64,000 nucleotides of DNA. It comes from Oopsacas minuta (taxonomy: Eukaryota; Animalia; Porifera). How positions within the stretch are numbered: position 1 is the stretch's first letter; every line of letters starts with the position of its first letter. Below the pieces are notes generated by a model, which was given only the letters and a program-made list of their open reading frames with translations, did no database searches and was not told the origin of the DNA. A program made the translations under genes and the position numbers. The stretch covers positions 636,619-700,618 of the forward strand of contig JAKMXF010000111.1 in NCBI GenBank assembly GCA_024704765.1, in the 5' to 3' direction. Positions 8,513-58,400 of this stretch are shown piece by piece.

Positions 8513-8627
8513 CTAATAATTATATTAACCTTAAGAACTGTTACTAAATATCTGTATTGTAAATTTGTTTATTTCCTTTATTAATTAGTTATACATTAGT
8601 CTTATTGATTTCCATCAGATAGTTATA

Positions 8628-36482: not shown

Positions 36483-37479
36483 TTGCTTTACTCTCTTTTG
36501 TTCTTTGCCGCGAATGTTTATATAGTCCACGTGTAGCAGTGTGCTGTATAGAGCCTATAGAGATCAAGCCCACTAAGTCCTTCGTTATCTTTGGTTCGTA
36601 AAATTGTAAGTAGTTAGTCCCAGGAAGAATCTTATTGCATATCTTTGTAGTGCTTAAATAACAGCACAGAACATCTGGGATGGAGAAACCTATGCTAATA
36701 AAAGTTTTCAGATATGATTAAGAATGCCCGGTGTCATTTCTCTTATATTGGTTCTTAGCTGTTTGTTTTTAATGAAATATTTGGTGGTTTCTATAGCAAT
36801 TAATTCTGTATTATTCGCCTACGATAAATAGCTACTGATTGGATACATATATCAATTTTATTGTATAAAGCCAATACATGGTTTTGGTGAAAATTCCATT
36901 ACTATTATTCTACACTTGGAATTCTTAGAGTTGTTTGCGAAATTATTAATCTATCTTCTCCGTGACACAAATACTCCTCTCCGAATTCAAATTATTTTAA
37001 TTAGGTCCCATAGCTATTTGTTGGATTGCTACGTAATCTATTATGTAATCTATCTAATCAACATTCTATAAGAGAAATCTTATTGATTTGTATATCAAAT
37101 AGAATAATTTTCTTATGATTAATCTCAGTAAATATTCTCAATTACATTCTTTCCTAATCCCAAAAATTTTACTTTCAATGACCACATTCTTTTTGAGATT
37201 TTCATTGTCAGGCATTACAGCTAAAGAAGCTCTTTCCTGTTAAGTAGAATTGGAATGTATTTGACTTGACATATTTTGTAACATTCTCTGTAGGTACTTT
37301 AGTGATACGTAACTATGTCTCCTGATTTAATTCATAGTATCAGCTTTGAATTTTGAATTTAATGCACTTTCTTTAACACAAATACCAATATTGGAATTTA
37401 GCCGATTCTGTTCTCATTGGTAGGGCATTGTAGCATGTAGGGGACTGGAAGTGTATGTCTTTAAGAATTAATGCGGGTC

Positions 37480-37668
37480 GGGTTGACTGAATAAGACCGA
37501 ATTTACAGTGTGAAAAATAGATTTTTCTAAGACTGGAATAAGACCGAATGGAATAAGATACGCCTTACAGGAGCAGTAACGCGACCCCCTAAAGGGGGCC
37601 CCGGCGAAACGCTCAATATCATTGATGAAGTAGGTAATGGGGTGGATTCGGTCTTATTCATGTTTCCC
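37480..37668. mobile_element. 189-bp MITE with imperfect TIRs and a 9-bp target-site duplication (Mutator-like by TSD length)
   Basis: Direct repeat atgcgggtc at 37471-37479 and 37669-37677. Ends gggttgactgaataagaccgaat and attcggtcttattcatgtttccc are inverted (GGG plus a 15-bp perfect core). Internal extra copy of the core at 37535-37549. Confidence 0.8.
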
Positions 37669-38594
37669 ATGCGGGTCCATTGAAGTTTGGTATTCGGTCC
37701 TAGATTATTGATGGTATAATTGATCTTTGGCGTTTTCAAAGGCTAATTTCCAATTTGATATAACATGTGGTATGCAATATTTCCGATGGAATTTGATCCT
37801 ATATCGATTTATTGAGGTAAATCCGGGTTAATTGAGACATTAATTTCAAATTAAGTGACTTTGATTGATTAATAAATTATCAGCTTTGCCACTATCAAGA
37901 TTTCTCTATTCGCAGATTCATCAGTCTGACAATTAATTGGCCCAAACTGCTAATTACATTCTAGACTTATTTCGAATTTTATCAGAACCTGCTCGAGCCC
38001 ATATAATCTAGGTTTATCACTACTATTATTCAAAGTTTAATGTCCAATTCTGATTGAGATTTACTTAGTGGCAATTAATATATACAAAATAATAATAATA
38101 ATTGAGCAGATGTGAATTATATTTGAAATAGAGTGATCATTCTAACGGCCTCAGGCCTTGAAAGGAAGGCCTTAACGTGACAATTGAACATAACACTATA
38201 ATCTCGTGTTCCCATTGAAAATTGATGGCAAAGAGTCTGTGTAATGAATAATAGCTAGTAATGGCAATAACTTTCGACTGACATCTTAATTGAAATTTAA
38301 TTACTAACTCTGAGGTAGTGTTAATTAGGTTTCTATCGAAATATATTGTTTTAGGGGAATTTCTTAAACCCTGTTAATGGTTGTATATTATATGAATTAT
38401 TCATGCTTTCTTCCTTTGGGGAGTTAAGTTTGTTTGAGAATTCCTGGAGCACGAATTAATAAGTTTGTTATGGAATATAACTTTTACGTATTCTGTTAAT
38501 ATGTATATTGTCTGCTCTGTAATAAAAGGATCCTTTATTCTATACCCTGAACCAAAATATCAGTCCTGATTAGTTAGCTATATACGCTTCACAG

Positions 38595-40809
38595 ATGGAG
38601 GAGAAGCTGAGAGATACTGTTGAGTCTAAGGTTAACTCATCTACAGGATTGTGTAATGAATGTACACGTTATCAAGCTCCAGGTATGCTATTCATTATAT
38701 TACTCAATATACTGGAAGAACGATCATTATGTAGTAAATATGAGTTGTATGAAAGATTAAAGTTCTTTGAAATATTCAATTTCCCGGAGTAGAGATAATG
38801 TTAATTCTACACTGCATATTCCCCAGCTATTAATCTCTTGGATCTACTTAGTTAATCCTTGATAGAATGTAATATATTGCAATGCAATTTACCTATCAAA
38901 CTATTCCTAGAGAATAATTACACTGAAAAGTTATACAACACAAGGTTCCAAGATGTAGAGAAGATGATTGATACTACCATACAGATATGCCATATGCGAG
39001 GCTCGGTGGAAGCACAGACTGGGAGCATAATTACAGTCTGTGACGAGCTGTTACGGCTGCTAAAAATGACATGTTACGGTGTGTTATTAATTAACAAATA
39101 CACTTTATATTATGTTATATGAACTCGGTTATTATCTGTTGTTTAAGACCGCAGGCTTTGTTCGTAACATAAACTTTGAAATAATTCAATATGCGAGTAC
39201 AGAGTAGGTATTTGAAACTTCCTATGATAATGCAAGATATTCCATCTGATACTTATCATCCAGGCTTGCTAATTTATGTAATTTTTGGTTAATTATACTT
39301 TTGTTTCGCGTTTTTAGAAAACTTTGAGTTAGCTAAGAAAGTTGAACAACTAACTGACGAATCTAATCGCGAAATCCGCAGAGTTGGTAAGTATAATATC
39401 TGAATTGGTTACTCCTTGGATCTTAAAGTTATATGCTATTCAGATGATAAGGTGAAGTATTTGGATTTGGAACAGAAAATTACGAAGAGAAATTTAAAAA
39501 CTGTGAGAAAGAAATCACGAACAAGTAAGCATTTAATAAATAAAATAAAATAAAATGGAGTATTAATGATATCATCTATAGATACCCCTCACCCTTACAA
39601 ACCTCCTGAAGAACCAATAATTAAACATGAGCATAATAGCAACAGAGTTATCACTACTGATTATGACTCACTCAAGTCACTCTGCAGGGTAGATTATATT
39701 TCTCTAAGTAATACTGTACTTTCTATCTTCTCTCATCTAACTGTGAATAGCCTTGTTTCCCCAATATTTATCAGAAATCTGAATTGATTATCAGTCAATT
39801 TTGGTACTCGTCATTGGAAAATTTCCAGTTTGTATTTTTTGAATTCTCATAATAATTGGCCATCAAGTTGCTTCAACTTTTATTAATTAGTTAAAATATA
39901 GAATCTCCGATATTCTGCTAACTATTTTCTTTACAAATAATTTCTTCTTGCTGTTACCAACTCTTAACACTGCTTTTACCTATAATTTGTATCCTTAGAA
40001 AGAAAGAATTCTGAGATTATACAAATATTTCTGATAAACTATCAATTTCTTGCTTTGCGTCATATACACTTAGGTTTCGTTAATAAGATACGAAGGAGAT
40101 AACATTTTTATCTTCATCATACGCTTACTGTCTACCTCATCTCTCCTTTCTTGTATTTCTAGTCATCTGGGAAGTTAGACTTAGAATTTATGCTCCGTAT
40201 GAACCAATTAATGTCTGACTTTGTACAAGACACTCATACTAACGAGTAAGTTATAAATTAGTTAACGTATGTTATATGAAATAGTTCATTTGTTATACCG
40301 TTAGGTTAAATCTACCTCCCATGGGACAGCTAGAGTGTGAAGCGGTAAGTAAAGGGATATCTTTATAATCTCAAATATAGCATGTGTTCTAGGCCAATAT
40401 CAATGTATGAACAGTTCTAATTTCGAAACGAAGTCTTCACAATTCTCTGAGAAAATTTGACGAATATTCTATTCGTATCAGATTTAATGCCTCAATATTT
40501 AGGTGACTAAACTTGCACAAGTTTATAAACTTCGTTATCGGTTTAACAAGACAAGAGCTCAATCATCAACCACCTATCTTATCAAGGCCAGGTATGTTAT
40601 TGTATACATTACTTATTTCTTATTCAGATTAACCCTCTCTTTTCATTGATAGACAAACAACAATGCCAGCCTCAGGAGAAGTAGATCTAATCTTAAACTC
40701 ATTTGCAGACATGAGGTAGTACCCTGTTTATTAGACTCATTCATTTGTTAGATAATTTGATAATTTGTTTTACAGTAATAATTCCATTGACCAGAAGCAA
40801 ATGGACTAG
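38595..40809 (+). CDS. Unannotated ~270-aa multi-exon protein (coiled coil plus divergent R3H-like domain), ~10 exons
   Basis: Consecutive AG/GT-bounded exons with compatible phases: MEEKLRDT.., ENNYTEKLY.., ENFELAKKVEQL.., DDKVKYLDLEQ.., NTPHPYKPP.., SSGKLDLEFM.., LNLPPMGQLECEA, VTKLAQVYKLRY.., RQTTMP.., stop at 40807-40809. Confidence 0.65.
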
Positions 40810-41065
40810 CAATTTGTAGAAAGAATTGAATGCTTATTCTATAGCTGAATAATCACCGTGAATGTTCCTCACATAGAGTGGTGTAGTTTATTGATTATAT
40901 CTTGATGCAGCTCTCCCCATCCTTCAATTGGACATTTCAGGTCTTCTAGAAGTAGTAACTATCCCCAATTTTATGCATTGTAGCATCACACACACACAAT
41001 ACCATAGTCATTTCTATTTTGCTTTATGTAATTATTGAAACAACTCTTTAGAAATTTATTTAATT

Positions 41066-41176
41066 CAGTGCTTGCCGCGGTTATAAGAACACCGGGTATA
41101 AGATAAAAGCATCATCCTCTGAAGATACTTCTCATATTTTCTGTATAGTTTCTGTTCTTAAAACCGGCATCCACTG
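41066..41176. mobile_element. pogo/Tigger-like MITE (CAGTG...CACTG)
   Basis: Left cagtgcttgccgcggttataagaa versus right-end reverse complement cagtggatgccggttttaagaa; TA on the right flank. Confidence 0.6.
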
Positions 41177-41217
41177 TACAAACTTTCTATTTACAGCGAT
41201 TGAATTATTGTTGAAGT

Positions 41218-42456
41218 ATGTCAGGGCCTAAACCTGCAGTAGAACTTAAAGCCTGGCTAGAGGGAGGTAGAGTATTCCTAACTGATCAAGAGCTGCACTG
41301 CTTCATAACATTGACTAACATCAGTGATAATGAGAGGAGGTCAAGTTCAAGCTCTGACACAGAGAGTGAGCATGTCAACCCACGACTAGCTTGGCTAGGA
41401 GCACAGATATATTGTATCTGTGTAATAAACGAATCAAGAGTCCTACCGCCGAAAGTACGAAGACTGACAGACCCTAATACAGCTTCACCAACTACAAGTT
41501 TTGTTCCTACATCTGGTGAGAAGGGATACTGTATACACTCTACTCCTAGCACGATATTGTTATGTGACCTTCCTCTTAATCCCCAGCAGAGTAAGACTGT
41601 TACTTATCACGAGAAGATACCACTAGGTCCCCCTTCATTCTCTGGGGGTATGGTCCGATATGTGTACAAACTTGTAGTAGGAGCTCAGATTGTAGGGAGA
41701 AGTGCTAAGCTGATTAAACTGCCTCTTCAAGTGATTCCTCTCACCAACAAACTGTATATAAGGAGTCCTGCTATCACAGAAGTTCTGCAGACGAACCCTG
41801 ATGGTATCGCTAACCCCTTCATTGTACCTCTGACCAAACAGTCGAAGGAAAAGTCTAACGCTTTTATAGCTAGTGTACAAGAAGCACTATTCGACGAGTC
41901 TTCTAGGAAGAGTACTCGCTCTTATAACCTTAAACAAGGGATAGAGCAGGGAGATATCATATGTACGGTATACATTGTGAAGCCTGTACATGCGTTAGGA
42001 GATGAGATTGTTATCAGTTTGGACTTCAAGCAAGCTACGAAATTACGTTCAGCTAGAGTAATAGTATTTCTAGAAACAGTAGAAGAAGTTAATCAAGATA
42101 ATCGCAGATCTTCTGGTATTAACTCCCCGGAAAAGTTCCATTACGTCACAGAACATGCTATGCACGCTCAGGACACTATGTTCCTTACAGAGACACACCT
42201 CTCTCTACCTATACCACTCCAAGCTACTCCTAGTTTCAAGACGTCACTTGTCACAGTAAAATGGCAGTTAAGATTTATATTTCTGACAACTGGGCTAGAA
42301 ATATTCAAACCTGATACTGATGGATTCCAGCTGATTAACGCCAATCCGAATGAACTTAAATCTGTCATCTGGGAGCTTCCTGTTGTTGTAATACCTAGTT
42401 ACCCTGGTCCCGCCCTCCTAGACAATCCTGCTCCTTGTGAAGTTATCAGGTTATAA
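41218..42456 (+). CDS. RGP1: RAB6A-GEF complex partner Rgp1, intronless
   Basis: RLAWLGAQIYC, GEKGYCIHSTPSTILLCDL, GPPSFSGGMVRYVYKL, TPSFKTSLVTVKWQLRFIF. Confidence 0.92.
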   Translation: MSGPKPAVELKAWLEGGRVFLTDQELHCFITLTNISDNERRSSSSSDTESEHVNPRLAWLGAQIYCICVINESRVLPPKVRRLTDPNTASPTTSFVPTSGEKGYCIHSTPSTILLCDLPLNPQQSKTVTYHEKIPLGPPSFSGGMVRYVYKLVVGAQIVGRSAKLIKLPLQVIPLTNKLYIRSPAITEVLQTNPDGIANPFIVPLTKQSKEKSNAFIASVQEALFDESSRKSTRSYNLKQGIEQGDIICTVYIVKPVHALGDEIVISLDFKQATKLRSARVIVFLETVEEVNQDNRRSSGINSPEKFHYVTEHAMHAQDTMFLTETHLSLPIPLQATPSFKTSLVTVKWQLRFIFLTTGLEIFKPDTDGFQLINANPNELKSVIWELPVVVIPSYPGPALLDNPAPCEVIRL

Positions 42457-42567
42457 GTTGTATTTGCACATATTTTGTTATTAGCAAGGTAAATCGGATA
42501 ATATCTGTAACAATATAGGAATTGTATTTACATTTTATAATAATATACTGTTTGTTGTCATAGCTTA

Positions 42568-43935
42568 ATGAGTGCAGGAGAGCAAGAGAGTTTACAGGTC
42601 CTGGTGAAGAGAGGAGAGGACAGATTGTTAGTTATTCTGGAGAGCATTGAGGAGAACAAGAAAATCTTATCTAGATTTAAAGAAGAGGAATATGAACTCA
42701 AATTAAAAATAGAAAATACCTTTGCTAAAATCCTCAGAACAGTAGAAGCAAGGAAAGAGTTTTGTTTCCATAAAATCGATCTTGTCTATCAACCAACTTT
42801 CAATAGACTTGAAAGCACAATTACATATCTCTCCGACCAGATGATCACTCTAGAGAAGGTCTGTGAAGATGCTAAACAGTCGAGAACTATATCTTACAAC
42901 GTAGAGACGATAGAAACTGAGATACAGAGGATACACAATGAAGTACAACAACGGAGAAAGACATTCAACTCTATTCTATCTGACAACACAGTTCTAGGAT
43001 CTATACAACTACCTACTATTAAATTCTCTATTCACTCACAGGTAGACCATGTGCTACAGCATCTGGGTAGTATTACACAAGAGTTACCTATTGAGCGTAA
43101 GAAGATAGGACAGAAATTGAAGGAGGTTGCTCTTGAGTCTGTCTACTCGATGGATTCACGCACTCTCTCACTCGCTATCTTCAAGCCAGGTAGTATGCAG
43201 ATACGTAAAGGTAAGATATACGTAATAAACGAGTATGATAAGTCAGTGTGTATTATCTCAAATCAAGGCAAATTATTGAGTGCTTTTTCATTCGCTAAAT
43301 ATGTACCAGATGACGACTCACAACAGGACCTCGCGGTTAATGATAACTTCTTATTCATTTCTGTCTGGAAGAAAGATTGCATAATTGCTTTTGGGCATGG
43401 TGGTATGTTCTATAAAGAAGTAATCAAACTCACTCCGGGTATAGAGTTCAAATCTCCTTACAGCATGTGTGTGACATCAGCACAACAGCTGGTGATAGCT
43501 GATAGAAAGAACAAACGTGTATTAGTGTGTCATCCAGATCTTAACGGAGCTCAATGCGTTATTATGAATCCTAATATTAAATTGATTATTCATTTGACAG
43601 TCACGAGGGAGGACAACATTCTTTTAGCTAACGACTGTCGTGAGGGACTGAAGCCTATAGAATTCCAGCTGTACAATCTCACCGGTCAGTTGTTGTGCAT
43701 AATGCAACCTAGTACACAGCATGTTATTCAGGGATTAGCTGTGTCTTTCCTTAAACATATTATTTTGAGTTGTGGCAGTGGTAACTCTATTTTCATCTAC
43801 AACACTACTCAGTCACATGTATTACAAATTCCACTAGCTAAAGCTACGTGTGTACGCTACATGTCTGAGAAATATCTGTTCGTGTCCTGTATCAACAGAA
43901 TATTAGTCTATGACCTAGAGCACTTAATGCAGTGA
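42568..43935 (+). CDS. Coiled-coil plus NHL/beta-propeller protein (TRIM-like)
   Basis: N-terminal BBC-like coiled coil; EFKSPYSMCVTSAQQLVIADRKNKRVLV NHL blade. Confidence 0.75.
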   Translation: MSAGEQESLQVLVKRGEDRLLVILESIEENKKILSRFKEEEYELKLKIENTFAKILRTVEARKEFCFHKIDLVYQPTFNRLESTITYLSDQMITLEKVCEDAKQSRTISYNVETIETEIQRIHNEVQQRRKTFNSILSDNTVLGSIQLPTIKFSIHSQVDHVLQHLGSITQELPIERKKIGQKLKEVALESVYSMDSRTLSLAIFKPGSMQIRKGKIYVINEYDKSVCIISNQGKLLSAFSFAKYVPDDDSQQDLAVNDNFLFISVWKKDCIIAFGHGGMFYKEVIKLTPGIEFKSPYSMCVTSAQQLVIADRKNKRVLVCHPDLNGAQCVIMNPNIKLIIHLTVTREDNILLANDCREGLKPIEFQLYNLTGQLLCIMQPSTQHVIQGLAVSFLKHIILSCGSGNSIFIYNTTQSHVLQIPLAKATCVRYMSEKYLFVSCINRILVYDLEHLMQ

Positions 43936-44230
43936 TCACACTGTTTCACTTATATCTCAGTTATCCACAATACATTTGAATATTTCCCTCGGCTATATTA
44001 CCCTCAGTTTTCAGTATTTTGTAATAATTGCAATAAGATTGGTTTTAATGATATAATAATATTTATTCGGGTTAGCATATGCATATTATAATTACACAAT
44101 ATCACAAAAGTATCTAATTCCCCCAAATACTTCACTTGAGTATTACTAATCAATACATGATAAATCTGAGGTAGTAGATCTACAGTTTTAGCAATAAAGT
44201 TGGTTAGATTGATGCTACAATACTATCTTT

Positions 44231-46003
44231 ATGGAGACTACTAGTTCAATAGAGCTGCGCTCAATTAATTATGGCCGTACTAGGACAGTAAAGAATGTGA
44301 GGAAAAACAGAATCAGGAAATCTATCTCAAAAGTTTTTCCTTTCTTTGAAACCATCTGTATCTTCAGAGGAGCTTTGTATGTTCTTTTAATCATTTTTCT
44401 AATTCGTATCTTCGTTTTTTTTACTCTTGAGTTCTTGTACAATTTCGGTAGTTTGGGTCATTATCGCCTTTTTACATGTATACGTGGCCCCTCTTCTGGA
44501 CACTCCTTTAATTCCCTTGCCTTCATTTGCTCCCCATTGTTCGGTGTTTTAGCTGACAAATACATCTCTAGACATAAAATAATAAGTTTCGGCATGTTTA
44601 CAATGTTCATAGGTTCCATCGCCTTTATTTTATTCTTCCTTACGACACACCATTTTACTTCTGAAGATCAATGCGAGAAATATGAAGCTTTATTCTCATT
44701 CATTATTCTGTTCTATATAATCGGATTTTCTGCCTTACTCCCTCTCTTACTCCCGTTTGGTGTAGACCAGATGGAAGGAGCGAGCGAACAAAGTCTCAAA
44801 TCTTATTTCGCTTGGTTCTTCGGGGTTCTCAATGCAGGTGCTTTTGTGAGTTATTCTTATTACTTAGGATTCACAGACGTAAGAGATATTAGTTTATACC
44901 AAATAGATAAAGATAATAATCCCAATGTAGTTATTATCTTATTGGCCGGTTTGTTACTTGGAACAGTTTCATTATTCATAGCTATACTTTTGTACAAATT
45001 CCTCGTAAACACTAAACGTCTATCTGTTTACCAACCATCTGGTGATCCTCTAGGCCTTATATGGAATGTAACTAAAAGTGCTATGAACAAATATTCACAG
45101 AAGAGACGGAGACCTAGCATTACTCGTAGTATACAATATTTAGAAGGTTCTCAGAGACTGTTAGATTTGGCTAAAGATGATCACGGAAATAATACCTTTG
45201 AGAATGTGGAGAGTGTTAAAACATTCTATCGAATAATGCCATTACTCCTAGCTTTGATTCCTTATTTCGCTGTGACTAGTGTAAGTACTGGAGCTTATAT
45301 TGAGCAGAATATTTATTTGTTCGATCAGTTTGAAGATTCAACTATTATACCACAGCTAGTTGATCCCTGTATTATAATAATCCTTGTCTTTTTATTCGAA
45401 TTCAACCCCGTGAAGAAGAGATTGAAGTTTTCTAGCATTCTACAGAGAGTATATATTGGTGTATTTTTCGGTTTAGCTAGTCTAATATTTGCTACAATAG
45501 TTGAATTTGTTAGTACCTTCGCTGCTCCTTTTAAACTCTCTTATGGAGCATTACAAGCATTTAAGAATCTTACTCACCCAGATGATCCGGGACAGAAAGT
45601 TAAGGTTTTGCTTTTTAAAATATCATTTCAGTCACCTCAGTTCTTGCTAATGGGGATATCTGAGTTCCTAGCGGTTATTGGCATATTTGAGTTCATCTAC
45701 GCGCAATCTCCACGAGAGATGAAATGCTTCATATACGGTCTATTCCAGTGTATTCGCGGAATCGGTTATATAATCCCATTTATCGTGAATGAGATTCTTC
45801 AGGCTGCAACCTGTGCTTGTTCTAATTGCAATTGTAAAACCTGTGCAGCATATCATTATCAATGTAATGGTGCTCCAACCAATGTCAGCTACACTTATCT
45901 AGCGGGTACACTGCTATTCACACTCTATGTGATATCTCTATATTTTCTGTTCCGTAGATATAAGAAGAGGGTTAGACAGCCTAGGGAAATATGGTATACA
46001 TAG
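44231..46003 (+). CDS. POT/PTR2 family (SLC15-like) oligopeptide transporter, intronless
   Basis: GVLADKYISR, PFGVDQM, YFAWFFGVLNAGAF, FENVESVK, QSPQFLLMGISE, FIYAQSPREMK. Confidence 0.9.
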   Translation: METTSSIELRSINYGRTRTVKNVRKNRIRKSISKVFPFFETICIFRGALYVLLIIFLIRIFVFFTLEFLYNFGSLGHYRLFTCIRGPSSGHSFNSLAFICSPLFGVLADKYISRHKIISFGMFTMFIGSIAFILFFLTTHHFTSEDQCEKYEALFSFIILFYIIGFSALLPLLLPFGVDQMEGASEQSLKSYFAWFFGVLNAGAFVSYSYYLGFTDVRDISLYQIDKDNNPNVVIILLAGLLLGTVSLFIAILLYKFLVNTKRLSVYQPSGDPLGLIWNVTKSAMNKYSQKRRRPSITRSIQYLEGSQRLLDLAKDDHGNNTFENVESVKTFYRIMPLLLALIPYFAVTSVSTGAYIEQNIYLFDQFEDSTIIPQLVDPCIIIILVFLFEFNPVKKRLKFSSILQRVYIGVFFGLASLIFATIVEFVSTFAAPFKLSYGALQAFKNLTHPDDPGQKVKVLLFKISFQSPQFLLMGISEFLAVIGIFEFIYAQSPREMKCFIYGLFQCIRGIGYIIPFIVNEILQAATCACSNCNCKTCAAYHYQCNGAPTNVSYTYLAGTLLFTLYVISLYFLFRRYKKRVRQPREIWYT

Positions 46004-46268
46004 ATGCTGTACGAATATTTTGCTTATATTTATTTGTATATATTTTGATGCATGATTATAATTTGTAAGGTTTTTCAGTTTATTTAGCTTTGAGTTTTTA
46101 TAGATATATTTATTGTTTGTATATTTGTTAGTCCAAAATTGAAAAAGCAAACATTCTTTGTAATAACAAAGGCTACGACGCTGCCTCAGTCAGTCCTGAA
46201 TACTTTGTATATCGAATAAAAGCAACTATTATACTATTTGATAGTATTCGTGTTATACGCGTAGTTAG

Positions 46269-48464
46269 ATGACAGGATTTGACAGACCAGGCATATTCTT
46301 CAGCGACCCGTTCACTACAGACGAACCAGCTCCCCAGGAGCAACACATAAACAGAGTTGCTGCAGTTAAACGTTTCAAAGAGTTTTTCAGGAAATTCCAC
46401 GATGAGAGCAATCAATACAACTACAGAGATCAGTTGAAGAGACATTATACCATCAAGGAGTATTGGGTAGAGGTAGAGATAGAAGATCTTAGTAGTTTTG
46501 ATGATCAGTTAGCAGACAATCTAACTAAACTCCCCGCGGAATATCTCCCTCTATTTGAGGAAGCAGCTACTGACATGGCAGATGAGCTCACTAGCCCTAG
46601 ACCCCTAGAGGAGGCTCAGATGGAACAGGTCCAGGTTACCCTCAGCTGGCAATCAAACCCCTTACAGATCCGTCAATTGAAATCAGTACATATGTCACGA
46701 TTAGTCCGTGTACCTGGTATTGTAGTCAGCTGTTCTAGCCTCAGAGCTAAGGCCACTAGCATAACTATTCGCTGTAGAGGTTGTAACAATACAACTCCTA
46801 ATATAGCTATGAAGCCTGGTTTTGACGGATACTCCCTCCCTCGTACTTGTTCATTCAATGCAGTATCAGGTAGAGACAAGTGTCCAATCGATCCCTTTAT
46901 CATATTACCTGAGAAATGTAAGTGTGTTGATTTTCAGGTGCTGAAACTGCAAGAAAGTCCTGATGCTGTTCCTACAGGAGAAATGCCTAGACACATGCAG
47001 GCGTTCTGTGAGCGATATATGACAGAACGTGTTGTGCCAGGAAACAAGGTAACGTTGCTAGCTATTTTCTCTATCCGGAGGTTAGCAGGGTCTGGACAGA
47101 GGGGTCAGCAAATGGGGGTTGGGCTTAGGAAGCCTTACCTACGTGTGGTGGGTGTAGATGTGTCCAGTGAACGATCTGGACAGAACAGAGGTAGTGCTTT
47201 CACACCTCAAGAGGAAGAGAAATTCCGCATCTTGTCAGCTCATCCTGACGTATACGACATGATATCACGTAGCATAGCTCCCTCTATATTTGGTAGTACA
47301 GACATAAAGAGGGCTATAGCTTGTCAGCTGTTTGGGGGCTCTAGAAAGAGAATGCCAGATGGACTAACTCGTCGCGGGGATATCAACCTGCTGCTCTTGG
47401 GAGACCCTGGTACGGCGAAAAGTCAGCTTCTCAAGTTCGTAGAGAAGGTCTCTCCTGTTGCAGTATACACCAGTGGGAAGGGTAGCAGTGCTGCTGGTCT
47501 CACTGCCTCTGTTATAAGAGACCCTTCTTCCAGAGGATTTGTGATTGAGGGTGGAGCCATGGTGTTGGCTGACGGAGGGATAGTTTGTATCGATGAGTTT
47601 GATAAGATGCGGGAAGATGATAGAGTAGCTATTCACGAGGCTATGGAGCAGCAGACTATCTCTATAGCAAAGGCTGGTATCACTACTACACTCAACTCCC
47701 GCTGTGCTGTACTAGCTGCTGCCAACTCTGTATTTGGACGATGGGATGACACGAAGGGAGCAGCTAATATAGACTTTATGCCTACTATATTGTCAAGATT
47801 TGACATGATATTCATAGTGAAGGATGTACACGATTTGAATAAGGATATCCGTATGGCTAAGCATGTTATGAAGGTGCATTTGAATGCTGTTATGACAGAT
47901 GAGACTGTGGAGGGGGAGCTACCTCTGGAAACTCTGAAAAGGTTTATATCTTTTGCTAAGCAGAGATGTGGACCTCGTCTCTCCAAAGTGGGAGGGGATA
48001 AGCTAGCTTACAGGTATGTTATGATGAGAGGGGGTACACGAGACCAGGAGAGGAGGACAGAGAGGAGATCTGCTATCCCAATAACCGTCAGACAGCTAGA
48101 AGCAGTTATACGTATTTCAGAGTCTCTAGCCAAGATGTCCATGCTCCCGTTTGCTACTGAGACACATGTCGACGAAGCTCTCCGTCTCTTTCAAGTGTCG
48201 ACGCTGGAGGCCGCTAGCTCCGGCACTCTGTCTGGGGTAGAGGGATTCTCTAGTGAGAGTGATCAGGACGAAATCAGGAGAGTGGAGGCTCAGCTGAAGA
48301 GCAGATTCCCTATTGGTTCTCAGGTGTCTGAACAGAGAATCATTCAGGATTTTGTTAGGCAGAAATACAGTGAGAGATCTATAGAGACAGTATTGAGTGT
48401 TATGCTGAGACGAGGAGAGCTACAGCATAGAATGCAGAGAAAGGTTCTGTTTAGAGTTAGATAG
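46269..48464 (+). CDS. MCM5: DNA replication licensing factor MCM5, intronless
   Basis: [23 protein letters not shown], Walker [21 protein letters not shown] arginine finger, [19 protein letters not shown]. Confidence 0.98.
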
Positions 48465-48621
48465 ATAGGATAGTTTGTGTATTGAGGATTAATACATTGA
48501 GAGTTAAGATGTGATTAATTGGCTGAAAACAGTTACAAACGTTAATCTCTGATAATATATAAACTCAATTTAATCTTCTTAGAATTATAAGGTATAACAC
48601 AAGCTGCTAAGATCCTCTAAA

Positions 48622-49032
48622 ATGCAACCTGAAGACTCTTCTGTTCAGAATAACGAGTTCATATTCCCTAATGGGGATATGTATGTAGGAGAGTATATAA
48701 AGCGAGTTGATAGATCAGTTATGAGACAGGGCTCTGGGGTATACACATCACATACAGGGTTCAAGCTAGAGGGTATCTGGGTAAAGGACAAGATGGAAGG
48801 GAGGGGCAGAGCTAGCTTCAAATCAGGAGCAGAGTATAAGGGGTTATTCGTAGACAGCAAGTTCTCAGGAGAGGGAGTATATACGCTACCTAATGGGGCT
48901 ACAATAGAAGGAAAATTTGATGGAAACAAAATAACAGGATCAGTTGTATTCACTGATAAGAATGGCTTGAGATGGTTAGGGGAGTTTAATGACCTGAAAA
49001 ACATTGAAACTTTAGAACTTGAATTAACATAA
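48622..49032 (+). CDS. MORN2: MORN repeat-containing protein 2
   Basis: FIFPNGDMYVGE, GIWVKDKMEGRG, SGAEYKGLF, YTLPNGA..GKF, GLRWLGEF. Confidence 0.85.
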   Translation: MQPEDSSVQNNEFIFPNGDMYVGEYIKRVDRSVMRQGSGVYTSHTGFKLEGIWVKDKMEGRGRASFKSGAEYKGLFVDSKFSGEGVYTLPNGATIEGKFDGNKITGSVVFTDKNGLRWLGEFNDLKNIETLELELT

Positions 49033-49091
49033 TCACTCCCATATGAGTATCTATACTATTATTAATCTCTCTTATATTAGATATCTAATCC

Positions 49092-51062
49092 ATGTCAGCT
49101 GCTCAAATAAAATCACTGAAATCTGACCTATCATCTCTCCAGGAACTTATCCCTGAGCTCTGTCAAACAGCTAAAACAACAGCCCCCAATATCAATCAGT
49201 GTCCTTCTAGGCTATACCCCACTAAGCTAGCTAGAGATATAATTCCTACAGCTGATACTGAGTATGTAGGATTATTAGAACTTACTATTGATAGATTACA
49301 GTATCTTATACAGTGTGTAGTATGTATCCTCGGGTCTCAATCTCCTCCCCTCTCCCTCCTCTCAGCTGTTAAGAAGCTGTCGTCACAACTAACCAGTCGA
49401 GATTCCACTCAATCCCTTTCAGACAACCCCATCTCTTACCCACAAGCTAATAACTCTACATACAAGTGTGTAGCTTCCCAGACCTATGAGACATCATTTA
49501 CTAACTGTATGAATTGTATAGAACTACAAGATGTATTATTACATGTAGCTTGTCTATTCACAGAGGGATTACAACCTCTAGGCTGTGAGAGTAGAGTTGA
49601 CCAGTGTGTACTCTCCTCTCTTGATCTGGACGCCTCTGATTTATTGCCCCCTCGTAAGTGGGCTGGTCCCATGGAAGAGGACGTGAAGTCATTTTCTACT
49701 CACCTGATAAATATTCAAAAGAGAGCTAATGAACTAGAGAAGAATGTTAGAGAGTTGAGTGAGCGACTCTTTGATAAATCCTCTGAGATCAGGGAGCTAC
49801 TTACTCAGCTGTCTTCTGTCAAGAGTGAATCTGTCAAATCAGCTGATCAGATGAGGAATGAGATGGAGCAGGAGAGAGAGGAGAGGAAGAGAGAGACACA
49901 CTCCATCTCAGTAGGCAGAGAGCAAGAGAGGATCAGAGCAGATAAACTACAGCATGAGATCAGCTGTTTACGACAAGACTTATCTTGTAAGTCTGCTACA
50001 ATGCTAAATACAGAGACTAGAGTAAGAGATTCAGAATCTGCTCTTAAGAGAATACAAGCAGAGAACACAGCAAGTATTGATAAAGTAATTAGTCTAGAGA
50101 AAGAGCTACAGGAGAGTGAGAGAGGGAGAATTGATACACAAGCTGATCTAGAAGCTAAGACTGTAACAGTTAAGAAGTTAGAAGTACAAGCCAGCTCTCT
50201 CCGACAGCATGAGACTAAGCTACAGAACAAGTGTGATTCTCTGTTAGGACAAGTATTAAGTATGGAGGAGGAGTTATGTAGATCTCAACAGGACCTTACT
50301 GAGAGTGTTAGAGAGAGAGAAGAGTTGAATAATCAACTGAATTCTACTCGTACAGAGATATATGAGCTGAATAGAGAGCTCTCTCAACAAGTTAATACTA
50401 TTACTAAGCTACAAGATAGTGATTCCTCGTATTCAGAGCTTGTAGATAGTCTTAAGGATAAGTTAAGTAATGCTAGAGATAAGTTAGAAACAGCTGATGA
50501 GAGATGTAGACTCCTCATGCGCTTCTCAGACCCCACAGATACCAGTGATCCATCCCAGACACAAGACCTGATATCAGCTAATAGTATTAAGATACTATTA
50601 ATAGAGGAGCAGAACTCTAAACTCAGACAACAGAGCTTAGCTTGTTCTCTCAATAGTGGTAACAGGACTGAGTTATTAGTTCCTACTCCTCTTTGGCATA
50701 TTCAGGATCTGTCTACTATGAAGGAGAGATACTCACGACTATCTCAAGAGGAAGGGACACTGTCTAATGAGTTAACACAATCTGCTAGTTACCTCGCAGA
50801 TAAGGAGGAAAAGTCTCGTCCTAAATCACTAGGAAGGTGTGGCCAGCTGTTAGAAGCTCTTTCACGCGCCAGATCATATGAGGATGCAGAAACGGATCAC
50901 AGGTTGCAGAAGGATAACGTTACTCACGTATGGTCAGAGGGACTAGACGGTACAGAGAGTAATGTTATTCATAAGATAGGACAGATATACACATGTGATA
51001 TCTGTGACCAGATGTTTCATGACCAATCTAGCCTCATATCACACGGCAGTCATTGTCATTAA
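49092..51062 (+). CDS. CCDC157: Coiled-coil domain-containing protein 157-like
   Basis: N-terminal IKSLKSDLSSLQ...LLELTIDRLQYLIQ, SQTYETSF..C..C, long coiled coil, LETADERCRLLMRF. Confidence 0.75.
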   Translation: MSAAQIKSLKSDLSSLQELIPELCQTAKTTAPNINQCPSRLYPTKLARDIIPTADTEYVGLLELTIDRLQYLIQCVVCILGSQSPPLSLLSAVKKLSSQLTSRDSTQSLSDNPISYPQANNSTYKCVASQTYETSFTNCMNCIELQDVLLHVACLFTEGLQPLGCESRVDQCVLSSLDLDASDLLPPRKWAGPMEEDVKSFSTHLINIQKRANELEKNVRELSERLFDKSSEIRELLTQLSSVKSESVKSADQMRNEMEQEREERKRETHSISVGREQERIRADKLQHEISCLRQDLSCKSATMLNTETRVRDSESALKRIQAENTASIDKVISLEKELQESERGRIDTQADLEAKTVTVKKLEVQASSLRQHETKLQNKCDSLLGQVLSMEEELCRSQQDLTESVREREELNNQLNSTRTEIYELNRELSQQVNTITKLQDSDSSYSELVDSLKDKLSNARDKLETADERCRLLMRFSDPTDTSDPSQTQDLISANSIKILLIEEQNSKLRQQSLACSLNSGNRTELLVPTPLWHIQDLSTMKERYSRLSQEEGTLSNELTQSASYLADKEEKSRPKSLGRCGQLLEALSRARSYEDAETDHRLQKDNVTHVWSEGLDGTESNVIHKIGQIYTCDICDQMFHDQSSLISHGSHCH

Positions 51063-51170
51063 TGTATATCTCTGTTATAAACTCTAATATATATTGCATT
51101 GCTAATATTGACATTATAATTATGGGAGATTTGTGTGTTAAAGTTGTCTATAATTTACTATTAGTTCAGT

Positions 51171-54100
51171 ATGGACTGGCTACATTTCCTGGAACACAAC
51201 TACACCCCACTACAATTCAATTCTGTCCTAACCTCAAACACAGATCGTTTCTCTCTCATACATCTCAATTTCGGTGAGGTATATTTTGAGGATTTTGCAG
51301 TTATCTACTATCCAGAGGCCCGTAACGAGGATGAGATGGTTAAGCTGAAGCAACAAGGGAGACTTAAGTTATGCTCTGAGACTCTCCTATTCGTACCTCA
51401 TGACTCACTATCTCCTCTCATCAAGATACCTTACAAACACTGTGATACGCTATCTCAATGGAATGGAAAATTTCTTAAAAGCATTCAGCACTGTGTGTAT
51501 GTACGTGCTACAGAGAAGGTATTGTTACTAGAAGGGAATAACATAGGACCTTATGAGCAGGTTAAGAAACGGGAGGGATATCTGTTCCGTGTGTTATATC
51601 AGGATGTTACAGCTGTTCTGCCTAAGATACACCGGCTGTACACCATATGGCATCAACCACAAGGTAGAGTATATGAAAAATCCAATTTGAATGCTAATTA
51701 TATCATTTTATATAGATAAAAGAATACAAGAGACTCTGAGATTATCTCATGAACAGTTTGATCATATTCGTTTCCAAAGTATGTGGTTATCTAACTTGTT
51801 TGAGAAGATTGTGTTTGAGAAAGCTGGCCTCCTCGTATGCCCTATGATTGAGAATCCAGGTCGTATAGCTCTAACCAACAGCTATTTATACTTCCAGCCA
51901 CTCAACAATATTTATGCTGAGCCTGTCATGTCCGTCAAGCTGTCAGACCTAAGATTAGTAGAGAAACGGCGTTATCTACTCACTCATATAGGAATAGAAC
52001 TATTCACCAAAAAAGGTAATTACTGATTTTCCAGATTTTTCAAGTCGTATTTTGCACGAATTTCCCTGCTAATACACCCGAACTTACTATTGAGAAAATA
52101 TTTCAAAAAAGTTGCTATTAGGTGAATACATATTGCTAATAGACGAACATCACTGTATAACGTGTTTATATTCCTTGTTTATTAGATACAAGTATTTTCC
52201 TTGCTCTTGAGACTAACTCATTTCGGGAACATCTATACTCACTCATTCTCAAACAAGAAGACACTAAATTGGAGCTTTTACCGGAACTGACAGTTATGAC
52301 AGATAAATGGTCTTGTAAGGAACTGCCAAACTTTGAGTATTTAATGTTCCTTAATTTCAAAGCTAACAGGAGTTTTAATGATATCACACAATACCCAGTA
52401 CTACCATGGGTAATTACTAATTATGATGGAAAGAAGTTGGATTTGAAAGATCCTTCAGTGTACAGAGATTTATCTAAACCTATAGGAGCAATAAACGCTA
52501 ACAAGTTGGCCATTTTAAAGAAGAGATACAAAGAAATGCCTCCACCTAAGTACCTGTACGGTACTCACTACAGTACTCCTGCTTATGTACTGCATTTCCT
52601 AGTTAGAACAGCTCCGGAGTATTTGCTGTGTTTACAGGTGTGTTCATTATAATAAGGAAGCTTAAATTATTGTTATGTGAATGTGTATTTTAGGATGGAA
52701 AATTTGACTACGCTAATAGAATGTTTCACAGTATTAATGAGACATGGCAGCATGCTCTTACAGGACCCTCTGATGTTAGAGAACTTATTCCTGAGTTCTA
52801 CTTATCTCCAGGAGATTTCTTGCTTAACGATGCTCAGCTCGAGCTGGGGGTAAGGGACTCAGGAACTAAAGTCAATGACGTACAGCTGCCTCCTTGGGCA
52901 AATAACGCTCGTGACTTTACAGCTAAACTGCGAGAAGCCTTAGAAAGTGAGCATGTGACGTCACGACTCCACTTCTGGATAGATCTCGTGTTCGGTTACA
53001 AACAGAGAGGAGAAGAAGCAATCAGAGCTGATAATCTCTTCCACTACATTACATATGAGGGAGCTGTTGATATAGATCCTGTTAATGACCCAATTAAGCA
53101 GAACTCACTTAAAATACAAATTATGGAATTTGGACAAACTCCCACCCAATTATTCATAGAGCCACACTCTTACTCTAAGCTATATAACAGCAATACATCT
53201 ATTGATAAGGTATATTCAACAGTTATGCCGACTGCTAATAACAACAACAACATAGCTATTACTCCTGTTATGGTATCCTATAATGATTGGGATGGAATAT
53301 CTCAACTCAGTTTTGAGATATCATACAAACTACATAAAGACAGTATGACAGCAGTCAGCACTCTGCCAAAGCAGAATTCTATCGTATCAGTATCTAAGGA
53401 CCATACACTGAAAATATTCTCCCTCACTAGTCAACAACAGACCAGAAGCACTGTGCTATCCAGTATGGCCCTCTCTTCTTGTCTAGTAATGCCTAATGAG
53501 GATACTATTGTTGTAGGATCATGGGATAACAGTATATACTTCTACTCTGTTGAATATGCTGATGTGTTGCATTGTATGCCTGCACATGACAGTTCTGTCA
53601 CTTGTCTGGCCTGGAGTAGTAATATACTCGTTACAGGATCATGGGATACTTCTGTTAAGGTCAGTATTCAATTGTTATATATAGTGGCTATTAGTTAATT
53701 GTATATTTTCCAGATATGGGATTACACCCCTACCAAAGGGGCGGGACCAATCAACACCCCTCAGATCCGAGGAGATCTTGATCATGACTGTGAGCTAACC
53801 AGTGTTGATATAGATAGTACTGGTGCTCTGCTAGTATCAGGCTGTGCAGATGGTAGTGTATGTCTTTGGGATGCACAGTCTATGGAGAAGATAGCAGAGA
53901 AGAGAATTTCTGCTACTTCTGTATGTTCATGTCTATTCAGTCCAGACAGCAAGTCTCTTGCTGTATGTACAGAAGATGGTATGATACATATATACTCAGT
54001 AGCTGAGGGACTACCACTGATTACAACCAGGAGTCCAGGAGAGCAGTGTAGCTCTATGTTATGGAATGGAGAGTATATTCTATGTGGTGGAATGAGTGGG

Positions 54101-54250
54101 ACATTATCAATACTCTCACTAAAATCTACAGTCACACTAGCAAAGAGAGATGCACATCAATCTGCCATCAGTGCTATTTCTGTAAATAATGACATGCAAG
54201 TTGTAGTTACCGCATCTACTGATAGGAATGTATCTGTTTGGAAGTTTTAA
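51171..54250 (+). CDS. NSMAF: Protein FAN (GRAM, BEACH, WD40), exons 51171-51663, 51716-52015, 52186-52637, 52694-53659, 53714-54250
   Basis: RFSLIHLNFGEVYFEDF, NRSFNDITQYPVLPWVI, YGTHYSTP, DVRELIPEFY, EFGQTPTQLF, WD40 repeats; all introns GT-AG and in frame. Confidence 0.95.
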
Positions 54251-54450
54251 CAATTGACTCTAAGAACCGTTGATATGCTGACAGAATACAGTTGAGAGAA
54301 ACGCCCGGTCCTTATTAGTTACTCCGGATATTGTTGTATATTTTGGTACATTTCACAAGTCCTATTTTTGTGTATAGAATTTATATAATTTCTATACAGG
54401 CTAGTGTTTAATATTTCCAATAATTGTAATTATCATTTCTTTGTCTGTTT

Positions 54451-55342
54451 ATGGATAGAATTGTAGCTAGCTCGATGACAGCAGTAATCGCATTGAAAGA
54501 TTTTGAGGTTAGCAATTTCCTATCTTATTCATTTAATAATTATCCTATATGACATCTCTAGGAGTTGTCGCATAATTCTCTTATAGGTTATTGTCCACAG
54601 CAAAGTCGCAAAGGCAGGATGGTCTCTCCTGAAGAGATTGCTTTTCTTCTTTCCCGGAGATTGTCAAAATACTGAAGCAGCTATGAAGGCTGCTAAATGT
54701 CACCAATTCATAACATGGTCATATGAGAATACGCTTGATATATTAGCCAATAGATTTCCAAATCGTATTATCTGTCTATGTAAGCCGAACTATCTCCATT
54801 TAAATAATTTTGCTTGTTATGATGCGTTCGTTGAAAAGGCGACTACTTTCGGTGATCCTAAATACTCTCCCTCAGTCAAGAGCTTTACTTCTCTATCTTG
54901 TTGTATCGATACACTTTGTAAAGAGAAATATATCGCAGAGTGTATAGATGAAATATCTGTAATGGGATTCAGTAAAGGTTGTATTGTATTGAATCAGCTG
55001 GTATATGAAATACAGATGGGTTTTCAAGATGAGAATATTGCTCAGTTTATTTCCATGCTTAGAGAATTCTATTGGTTAGATGGTGGACATAATGGTACTG
55101 CTGAAATATGGATCAGTGATTTAAATATACTTGAAAGTTTCGCGAGAATTAATCCAAGAATTTACATTGGTGTAACTCCTTACCAAATGAAGTCAGTGGT
55201 TAAATCCTGGGCTGCTAAAGAGAAAAGGAAATTTGTTGAGAGACTAGAGAGTGTGGGTGTGAAAGAAGTTGAAGTTGTTGAACACTTTTTCGATGCGCCA
55301 CCATCCCTAGAAAATCACTTTAATATTTTAAGCAATTTTTGA
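54451..55342 (+). CDS. C2orf69: UPF0565 protein C2orf69 homolog, exons 54451-54507 and 54587-55342
   Basis: FFPGDCQN, NRFPN, GFSKGCIVLNQL, YWLDGGH, VTPYQ, PPSLENHF. Confidence 0.92.
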
Positions 55343-55466
55343 CTGATAATTCATTTTACTTAATCTTTCGTTTATTTGTTGTGTAATAGATATTTGCAAA
55401 GCTAGTACATAGTTGATATGAGAGCTATTCAAAACAACATTTATTCGCATTTCTATCTGTTTTTAG

Positions 55467-58400
55467 GGAGATTTTGATGATAAAGAGTATGTAGAGAGGT
55501 TAGCTAGAGTGGATAATAATGTGAATCTCGGGCCTCTAAAAAAGCCAGAAGAATTTTGCCCAGATGTGAGTTACTACTGTAAAATATTTTTAAGCGAATG
55601 TTATACATTTGTATTTCTTCCCACATCAGGCACTTTTGAAATCTTTCCAAGAGAGTATAATTGTATTGAACCAGCTAAAAACGAAGAATCAAAAGAAAGT
55701 AGATAAGATTGAGAAGCAGTGTTATATTATTGCAAAGGAACATGATGATAACTTGAAAAAGCAGAGATTAATTTTTCAGGTAGATTCTCTACCAATCCTT
55801 AATAATTACTAATTATACATATAGTATACTCTCATTATAACGAGGGCTCGGGACCTCGGATTCATTTTGTTTTCTGCGGGGGTAAAATCAATTACTTTCA
55901 AGCTATAGGGGATAATATCACTTCGTTTTAATGACGATTTCATTATACCCGACTTGGTTATCACGGGAGTTTACTGTACTTCTTCCTATCAGGACTCTTT
56001 CAGAACTTATGAACAACTCGAGTTAAAGGTCAGAACTATGGCTGCTAAAGTTGTTCATCTTGGAGATCAACTGGAAACTGCGAATAAGAAAAAGAATAAG
56101 ACCGATGAAGCTCTACAACTGATAAAGTATTTTAATATATTTCAGAGGAATGAAGAGAATGAAACTAAACTATTTTCAAACAATTCACAGGCAAACCTTA
56201 CGCTATATTACATTATCTGTCTGTTCTCCTATTGTTGTTTATAGCTGTTTATTAGGTATTTGAAGCAGCAAAAGTACTAGACATCCTTACCTCTTTCGCC
56301 ACTGACCTTCCTGACAAGTAATTAATTAATATTATACATTGCTAGACAATATGTAACTAATATATACTTCTATAGATATACAGAGGTTAGGAGTAGAATC
56401 GAAGGTAAGATTGTGTGTGTTTATTACAGATTTGTATCATTCCCATTATTTCAATCAGCTTAGCTAATTACCCTTCTAGCCAAATCTCGAGATACCGAGA
56501 AGAGTTTATTGAAAGAATTCCACCATGCTCACACTCACAATGATACAGAACGAATGCGAAAATGTGGACAAACTCTATCTCTCTTCCCAAAGGTAATTAA
56601 TATCTATAACAGTGGCTGATTATCAGACTTAGTTAATGTATAAATAATTGCTGTCTTTCAATTGAACTTTAATCAATTGATGTATTTCTTAATACTTCTC
56701 ATTACGTGTGAGCTGGCTTCAGGTAGTATTGTTGTTCTACGAAGTGATTATACACTAACAGCCTACTGAGGTTAAGAATCTTCCCATGTGCTCTTTATGC
56801 ATTTGAATGCTTTAAAATCAGTTTTTCAAAAATTATACAAATTAATCGCGGTTATGAATTTCAGAAATTTGAGGTTATTCTTTCGATCACTTTCAAATGA
56901 GATTAGTGTATTCTTCAGGCTATCAGTTCCGATATATCTAACAGCTCTATGCACTGAAACAATTGGTATACTTTCTATTATATTTGCTGGGCAGTTTGAC
57001 GATCAGAGCGTATCTCTCTCTGCTGTAGCACTCTCTCAAGCTTTTATTAATATTACCGGATATTTTCCTATGCTAACATTAACCTCAGCAGTAGACAGGC
57101 TATTCACTAAATCAGATGTAATAGGTAGGAACAAATACACAGGATTGTTGCTACAACGCAGTTTGCTTGTTAACGCATACTTAATGTTACCTATTGCGTT
57201 TATATGGCTGAATACAGAGAATATTATGCTATTACTCAGACAGCCTCCAGAGCTATCAGCACTAGCGGGAGAGTATGTAACCGTTTACATAGCTATTCTC
57301 CCTGCTCTCTGCGTATCATCAGCTGTTGTCAAGACACTACAATTACAAGAAGTAATAATACCTTCCCTACTGATACTCATGTCTGCTAATTTTATAGAAG
57401 TTGTAATCGTATATCCACTCGCGTATTTCACGGATATTGGAGTACGTGCATTTGCTTTAGGCCCGGTTATAGCATTTTATTTTATAGCGATATCTCACTG
57501 TATGTATCTGCGCTGTGTTAAAATATGGAAAAGAATTTGGTGTGGATTTTCCTTCGAAGCATGGGAGAGCTGGTGTCAATATATTTGTTACGGGGTACCG
57601 TTGTTGTTAGTCAATCTACTGGAGATTGTTAGTATTCAGTCAGGTGCATTTATTCTTGGTATTGCATCTTATCAGCCAGTTGTTGACATTGGTATTCACG
57701 TGGTCGCGACTTGTATCAATTCTTTGATTTCAGTAAGCTGTATGTCTCTCTCATTAGCTACTTCTATTCGTCTTTCACAGCTCAGCTATGAGAGTCAGAG
57801 AAAAAGAATCAAAAAGATAGTTATCAACAGTTTAATAGCTATTATCATTATTTCACTATCTCAATCGGTTATCCTAGCTGCTGGTAGCCAGTTCTGGGGT
57901 AGAGTATTCTCCTCTGATCTCCGAGTAGCATCAGGCCTAGCTAATATATTATTTCTATTAGCTGCATATCATCCTTTTGAAGGTTTACTCATCCTATTTC
58001 AAGCTGTACTTAATGGTTTAAGAAGACACCATGTGAATAGCATATTTACATTATTTTTCTGTGTAGTCAGTTTCCCTATAGCTATCATTCTTGCTATGTT
58101 CTTGCCTGATCAAGCACTTGGATATTGGGTTGGGATAACCACCGGATACTTTACACGAATTGTTCTTTATATTGCCATTACAATTGTATACTTATCTGTT
58201 ATAAGCACTGTTTCTTATGCTCAGACAAGAATCAAAGAATCAACTCCACTCGTAGCTAATGATATTCCTCAACATACTGAGATTCCTTGTTATATATCTA
58301 CTGTTGGTGGTTTTGGATGCCTAAAATGGAAAATATTTCTTCTGAAGATTTTGTTGTTATTGGTGTTAGTAATACCATTCATTCCGCTAATAGGATGTCG

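Follow-up and report, generated by a model that had tools for sequence, protein, structure and literature searches.

Spliced leader (SL) trans-splicing has arisen or been retained in scattered animal groups, and operons are found in only some of these. In Caenorhabditis elegans, SL2-type operons consist of co-oriented, unrelated genes, with about 100 nucleotides (nt) separating the upstream 3'-end signal from the trans-splice acceptor. The operons of Ciona and Oikopleura dioica rely on a single leader class within a compact, intron-poor genome and leave almost no intercistronic space, and the polycistronic units of trypanosomatids are long same-strand runs of unrelated genes in which polyadenylation is coupled to trans-splicing. 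Here we analyse a 64-kb stretch of the genome of the glass sponge Oopsacas minuta (the window; all coordinates are those of its + strand unless a contig is named), in which nine unrelated genes follow one another head to tail on the + strand, and we describe the spliced leader that is joined to one of them, NSMAF.

The nine genes are Rgp1, a gene for an NHL-repeat protein, a POT/SLC15-like transporter gene, MCM5, a MORN-repeat gene (MORN below), CCDC157, NSMAF (also FAN), C2orf69 and EXOC5. Their stop-to-start gaps are, in order, 111, 295, 265, 157, 59, 108, 200 and 124 nt. A first-pass annotation, made from the sequence, had claimed a run of nine co-oriented, unrelated genes; open reading frames (ORFs), Pfam and the protein atlas reproduce its map and all eight gap lengths exactly. 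With the C. elegans SL2-type operons the locus shares unrelated co-oriented genes, monocistronic mRNAs and a discarded spacer, the distance here being 88 nt from a TATAAA at 51076 to the acceptor at 51164; it differs in that a leader of this kind seems to be added to the head gene as well, and in that polycistronic RNA was not seen. Like Ciona and Oikopleura it combines a single leader class with a compact, intron-poor genome, and the MORN-CCDC157 pair has almost no intercistronic space, whereas most of the gaps (100-300 nt) exceed the tunicate norm and both the sponge lineage and the leader sequence are unrelated to those of tunicates. The likeness to trypanosomatids lies in the ~24 of 29 recognizable window genes that occupy one strand, and in a coupling that would run over short pyrimidine-rich spacers. 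However, cis-introns, interspersed opposite-strand genes and TATA-like boxes set the sponge locus apart from trypanosomatid units, and nothing here suggests genome-wide promoter-less transcription.

In glass sponges (Hexactinellida) SL trans-splicing has been described before; an operon in a sponge would be new. The Aphrocallistes vastus genome paper describes a leader of ~37 bp (PMC10282587), and a 2021 methods paper, which counts hexactinellids among the trans-splicing groups, states that reports of operons or polycistronic mRNAs are lacking for these sponges (PMC7986045). The paper that describes the O. minuta genome (365 scaffolds, ~61 Mb, 36% G+C, intergenic distances averaging 2 kb) is silent on both SL trans-splicing and operons (PMC10280926), and our literature search found no later report of sponge operons. 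The leader at mRNA 5' ends is thus common to the published accounts (PMC10282587, PMC7986045) and to ours; the difference is that we assign coordinates to the SL RNA genes of O. minuta and to one acceptor. Operons are not reported in those accounts.

A spliced leader is joined to NSMAF mRNA

Four sequencing runs were compared over positions 48445-54444, as assembled contigs rather than single molecules. X1 and X2 are DNA: one identical X1 contig spans the stretch, and X2 carries Nextera adapters. The contigs of X4 skip or break at all four NSMAF introns, and X4 is therefore RNA. The fourth run, X5, is a 2024 low-coverage DNA run labelled as a different organism; over 48445-54205 it is ~97% identical to the window (~3% diverged), with changes and small indels denser in the gaps than in coding sequence, and its source is presumably a close relative or a diverged Oopsacas population.

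The X4 contig that starts at 51163 bears 11 non-genomic letters at its 5' end, AAAAAACTTAC. Read together with the genomic AG at 51163-51164 they give AAAAAACTTACAG, the exon end of the SL RNA genes described below. The leader tail string is not present anywhere in the 64-kb window and is therefore supplied in trans: NSMAF mRNA acquires its 5' end by SL trans-splicing. The acceptor strings quoted in the first-pass annotation are all present in the sequence, and for NSMAF this RNA contig uses ctattAG, which lies five bases ahead of the ttcAG (51168-51169) that had been proposed. The sequence ATTAG/TTC ahead of NSMAF is identical in three genomes.

We searched the O. minuta genome (61,460,524 bases, 365 contigs) for the source of the leader. 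AAAAAACTTACAG directly followed by GT occurs nine times, against two occurrences for the control, and all nine are on contigs other than that of the window. A looser pattern brings the family of SL RNA genes to at least 11 members with an exact junction core and three with one mismatch. Besides the copies placed in Table 1, contig C166 carries three with TTTACAG or TTTGCAG at the junction. The genes share a conserved unit of ~130 nt, in which a TATAAGTAG box (containing TATAAG) is followed by ~27 nt, the leader of ~46 nt (TTTGCTTTACAAACTTTTACTACAAATCTTCATAAAAAACTTACAG, ending in ...CTTCATAAAAAACTTACAG) and a GTAAGT donor, the exon/donor junction being ...CTTACAG/GTAAGTTGGC. In the consensus fold the donor lies within a hairpin, which is followed by two stems, one of them with a compensatory change, and then by a U-rich Sm-like site; this site, read off the sequence only, would be AGUUUUUGA in copy L007 and AAUUAUUG in the others. 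There are three sequence variants (L001-L006, L007 and L008/L009), and the 11 loose leader letters at NSMAF match all of them. Rfam gave no match to any family, either for the window or for an SL RNA gene.

In a distant glass sponge, Rgp1, which heads the run, receives a similar leader. In the species of assembly L018, whose CCDC157 is 53% identical to that of O. minuta, the RNA contig L020 joins AAACTTCATACAAAACTAAATACAG at a genomic tcttatttAG, 96 nt ahead of the Rgp1 ATG, and its leader (...CTTCATACAAAACTAAATACAG) is similar to the end of the O. minuta leader. For the species of L010, RNA contigs were found for Rgp1 and not for MORN, NHL or MCM5, for which the look-ups returned the genome only; among O. 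minuta RNA contigs, an exact-protein look-up gave no record for the MORN protein. A 2.5-kb contig from a species with 34% identity (L013) has 383 nt upstream of CCDC157 that hold neither a MORN ORF nor a leader; its library type is unclear and we set it aside as uninformative.

Acceptor-like signals ahead of start codons exceed chance. We scored the best pyrimidine tract plus AG within 45 nt ahead of the ATG for 32 gene starts in five genomes, the starts from closely related genomes not being mutually independent, and obtained a mean of 11.41 as compared with 9.68 (standard deviation 0.64) for shuffled sequences, with none of 1000 shuffles reaching 11.41; the reverse-complement and after-stop controls scored 9.41 and 9.66. 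At MCM5 an AG (46267-46268) abuts the ATG, and in five of five genomes a pyrimidine tract plus AG lies 0-5 nt ahead of it. At the acceptors in the window other than that of NSMAF, SL addition is predicted from such motifs. The SL half of the earlier interpretation of this run therefore stands, on the NSMAF RNA, the SL RNA gene family and the leader on Rgp1 in a relative; its operon half was not demonstrated and is weighed next.

Transcription units within the run

The reading we favour is a mixed one, about which we are evenly balanced between belief and doubt: the run would be split into several transcription units, among them a small operon of MORN and CCDC157 that probably takes in NSMAF as well. 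The run itself is a conserved and compact block of unrelated housekeeping genes on one strand, and at least some of its mRNAs receive the ~46-nt leader, made by SL RNA genes elsewhere in the genome, at an AG a few bases ahead of the start codon. MORN and CCDC157, probably together with NSMAF, would give rise to a single precursor, for which the TATA box at 48556 is a possible promoter; 3'-end formation at the upstream gene, with SL addition at the gene that follows, would divide this precursor into single-gene mRNAs. Both the co-transcription of the three genes and the promoter positions are what we infer.

This reading is carried by the only two spacers in which a separate promoter would hardly fit, MORN-CCDC157 (59 nt) and CCDC157-NSMAF (66 nt free of RNA). 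The former is made up of 3' untranslated region (UTR), a branch-like site, a pyrimidine tract and an AG. X4 RNA is present in it to at least 49066, so that at most 14 nt lie between the last RNA-covered base of the 3' UTR and the predicted acceptor. In the related assemblies L012 and L014 the gap contains a perfect TACTAAC ~21 nt past the stop and 28 nt ahead of the AG; it measures 59 and 64 nt in the two closest genomes, where the other gaps are similar too. Because the 59-nt gap has no room for a promoter, the CCDC157 precursor would have to start inside or upstream of MORN. At the second spacer, CCDC157 RNA (X4 record 15) stops at ~51096, 15 nt past the TATAAA, depth is 0 at 51104, and RNA resumes at 51163; this RNA-free stretch is similar to the intercistronic regions of nematodes.

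The strongest competitor, which we consider doubtful though far from negligible, is that the run holds no operon at all: every one of its nine genes would have a compact promoter to itself, the spliced leader would trim a short outron and supply the 5' end, and the run would be ordinary dense syntenic packing. Several observations weigh on that side. No RNA spanning two genes was seen among the X4 contigs, and of the loose ends listed in the window only the NSMAF acceptor gives direct RNA proof of leader addition. Two of the three gaps examined lack RNA contigs: besides the break after CCDC157, X4 depth in the MCM5-MORN gap is 0 at each listed position from 48481, which is 17 nt past the MCM5 stop, to 48579, although a filter may hide some contigs. 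The RNA stop and restart around the CCDC157-NSMAF spacer and the empty MCM5-MORN gap fit an operon or separate units alike. MORN RNA sets in between 48580 and 48596 (depth 1007 at 48596), and a TATATAAA box lies 27 nt ahead of this onset, a spacing equal to the estimated distance from TATA box to leader start in the SL RNA genes. The segment 48556-48582 may be a promoter with its start site, or it may hold an SL acceptor; both fit the MORN RNA onset. Promoter hints point both ways, with TATAAG ahead of Rgp1 and TATATAAA ahead of MORN.

Gap length and gene order add to the case for independent promoters. Divergent gene pairs in the same window share 205 and 304 nt, and gaps of 157-295 nt may therefore hold promoters as well. 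In species whose CCDC157 is 53% identical the homologous gaps widen to 184-944 nt, with the gene order unchanged. The same genes, in the same order and on the same strand, are found in four other glass-sponge assemblies (L010, L011, L012 and L014; Rgp1 was not called in L011), and we rejected this synteny as evidence for an operon because the flanks are conserved too. Upstream these are a G-protein-coupled receptor gene, RPB7 and a TGF-beta gene on the opposite strand, followed by a spacer of 4.6-9 kb; downstream they are MatE, a Rab gene on the opposite strand and RanBP1. The opposite-strand Rab and TGF-beta genes are as conserved as the nine, and the + strand bias of the window as a whole means that co-orientation is not peculiar to the run. 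To this may be added the statement of the 2021 methods paper that operons are not on record for hexactinellids (PMC7986045).

What speaks against a promoter for every gene is again the two short spacers. Between MORN and CCDC157, the 59 nt are taken up by 3' UTR, branch point, pyrimidine tract and acceptor, and the 66-nt spacer before the NSMAF acceptor would need to accommodate an outron and its branch point in addition to a core promoter and a start site. The promoters of CCDC157 and NSMAF would consequently sit within the upstream gene. A promoter inside the MORN coding sequence is possible; promoters buried in coding sequence are, however, less economical than read-through.

At the other extreme, the whole run could be a single operon, with one promoter in the 4.7-kb spacer ahead of Rgp1, a precursor of ~14 kb or longer from Rgp1 to EXOC5, and SL addition resolving every downstream gene. 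In its favour are the co-orientation of all nine genes with acceptor-like signals ahead of each ATG, the conservation of the whole block in order and strand, the TATAAG box ~100 nt ahead of the predicted Rgp1 acceptor, which aligns in three genomes, and the fact that no E2F consensus was found in the gap upstream of MCM5 in five genomes; as a test of MCM5 having its own promoter we set the last point aside as weak either way, since sponge E2F rules are not established. We consider a nine-gene operon improbable, because X4 RNA is nil at 48481-48579 next to a MORN covered ~1000-fold or more (with the reservation on filtered contigs given above), the TATA box ahead of MORN argues for a separate start, the conserved block between NHL and PTR2 may be a promoter element, and gaps reach 944 nt in relatives.

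That block, 25 nt long, is the sole long block identical in three genomes within the NHL-PTR2 gap. It is probably the NHL poly(A) signal with a U/GU-rich downstream element; alternatively, it could be a CCAAT-type element of a PTR2 promoter, which would add to the points against shared transcription.

The gene map and its surroundings

The window has ~37% G+C and is dense in long ORFs, most of them without introns. Genes were named from ORF calls, Pfam and the protein atlas, and the spliced genes NSMAF, C2orf69 and EXOC5 were compared exon by exon. The features are collected in Table 1.

Table 1. Features of the nine-gene run in the O. minuta window, and copies of the SL RNA gene on other contigs
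Feature	Position	Strand	Basis or remarks
Rgp1 upstream elements	near 41099; 41195-41196	+	TATAAG box; predicted acceptor ctatttacAG; 4.7-kb spacer ahead
Rgp1	41218-42456	+	ORF; Pfam Rgp1 1e-32; head of run
NHL predicted acceptor	42562-42563	+	gtcatAG; sequence listing
Coiled-coil and NHL-repeat protein	42568-43935	+	ORF; weak Pfam NHL; atlas NHL clusters 0.95
Conserved non-coding block, NHL-PTR2 gap	44026-44050	+	TTGCAATAA(G/A)ATTGGTTTTAAT
POT/PTR2 (SLC15-like) transporter	44231-46003	+	ORF; Pfam PTR2 1e-19
MCM5	46269-48464	+	Pfam MCM, MCM5_C and related domains
MORN upstream elements	48556-48563; 48581-48582	+	TATATAAA box; acceptor-like cttcttAG; motif listing
MORN-repeat protein (MORN2-like)	48622-49032	+	ORF; Pfam MORN 4.5e-11
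MORN-CCDC157 gap	49033-49091	+	59 nt; predicted acceptor tatattAG at 49079-49080, 11 nt ahead of ATG
CCDC157	49092-51062	+	ORF; atlas 0.97, PF28226 CCDC157_N
Spacer, CCDC157 RNA end to NSMAF acceptor	51097-51162	+	no X4 contig; poly(A)-signal-like hexamers listed
NSMAF SL acceptor AG	51163-51164	+	X4 RNA contig; context ctattAG
NSMAF/FAN	51171-54250	+	Pfam PH_FAN, Beach and WD40 on exon ORFs; four introns
NSMAF introns	51664-51715, 52016-52185, 52638-52693, 53660-53713	+	joints and loose ends, RNA run X4
C2orf69	54451-55342	+	Pfam C2orf69 3.6e-55; short exon 1 from 54451, main exon to 55342
EXOC5 (Sec10), first resolved exon	55467-55565	+	translation and comparison with L012 and L014; acceptor AG 55465-55466
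SL RNA copies, contig C10	47280, 77418, 92154		junction-core match
SL RNA copy, contig C16	67145		junction-core match
SL RNA copies, contig C19	67062, 82150		junction-core match
SL RNA copy, contig C41	92623		junction-core match
SL RNA copy, contig C133	200365		junction-core match
SL RNA copy, contig C313	344885		junction-core match
SL RNA copies, contig C348	25636, 29468		junction-core match

The NHL-repeat protein retrieves NHL beta-propeller structure rows in the protein atlas (TM 0.5-0.57), and the CCDC157 product is a coiled coil with a C2H2-like finger at its C-terminus; its homologues, on large contigs of other assemblies, are 53-72% identical. The first exon of C2orf69 was read from the sequence alone. 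In related genomes Sec10_N is called immediately past C2orf69. The first conserved coding exon of EXOC5 lacks an ATG in frame, and its acceptor overlaps a TAG; an ATGAG stands 49 nt upstream of it in the window and 28 nt upstream in L012 (16178-16400), +1 out of frame in both.

Within NSMAF intron 2 (52037-52130), a 31-nt stretch matches another, 1068-nt genomic contig of run X1, and a GC..AC joint at 52067/52130 is present in a single RNA contig of low depth; a small repeat or an artefact may be involved. Near the MCM5 start codon the hexamer ACGCGT (46257-46262, 12 nt from the ATG) resembles an MluI box and is not conserved in four related genomes.

The TGF-beta gene upstream of the run (33523-36530, - strand) consists of a mature-domain exon and a probable propeptide exon and points away from the run; a gene-free spacer of 4.7 kb (36531-41217) parts it from Rgp1. 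The two related sponges in which this flank was compared (L018 and L019) have a gene-free spacer of 4.6-9 kb. A second short tandem gap, at 8513-8627 (115 nt), leads from a gene for a 1348-aa protein with Chlamydia-PMP-type repeats to INTS2, and an acceptor-like tttccatcAG lies 9 nt ahead of the INTS2 ATG.

Long ORFs are far fewer per kb in the first 400 kb of the contig to which the window belongs, a stretch sampled in 10-kb pieces, than in the window. In a sample taken for gene orientation (200 kb in 10-kb pieces, 59 ORFs), gaps below 300 nt account for 7 of 26 tandem neighbours as compared with 0 of 14 in other orientations (p = 0.035); this sample is underpowered, two of the seven short tandem gaps resemble split genes, and we do not use it as evidence.

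Implications for operons in sponges

A broader claim would be that glass sponges possess true operons, with MORN-CCDC157-NSMAF, and perhaps longer parts of the run, resolved by SL addition and conserved across Hexactinellida. We hold this claim tentatively and lean slightly against it. If true, no operons would have been described in Porifera before these: sponges would be added to the operon-bearing groups, alongside nematodes, tunicates, flatworms and chaetognaths, and the link between spliced leaders and operons would extend to one of the earliest-branching animal lineages. Co-transcription, if true, would also bear on whether operons follow near-automatically from the combination of a compact genome and a spliced leader. 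For O. minuta itself, the annotation of 5' ends and start codons would gain genome-wide from knowledge of the leader sequence and of the acceptor rule.

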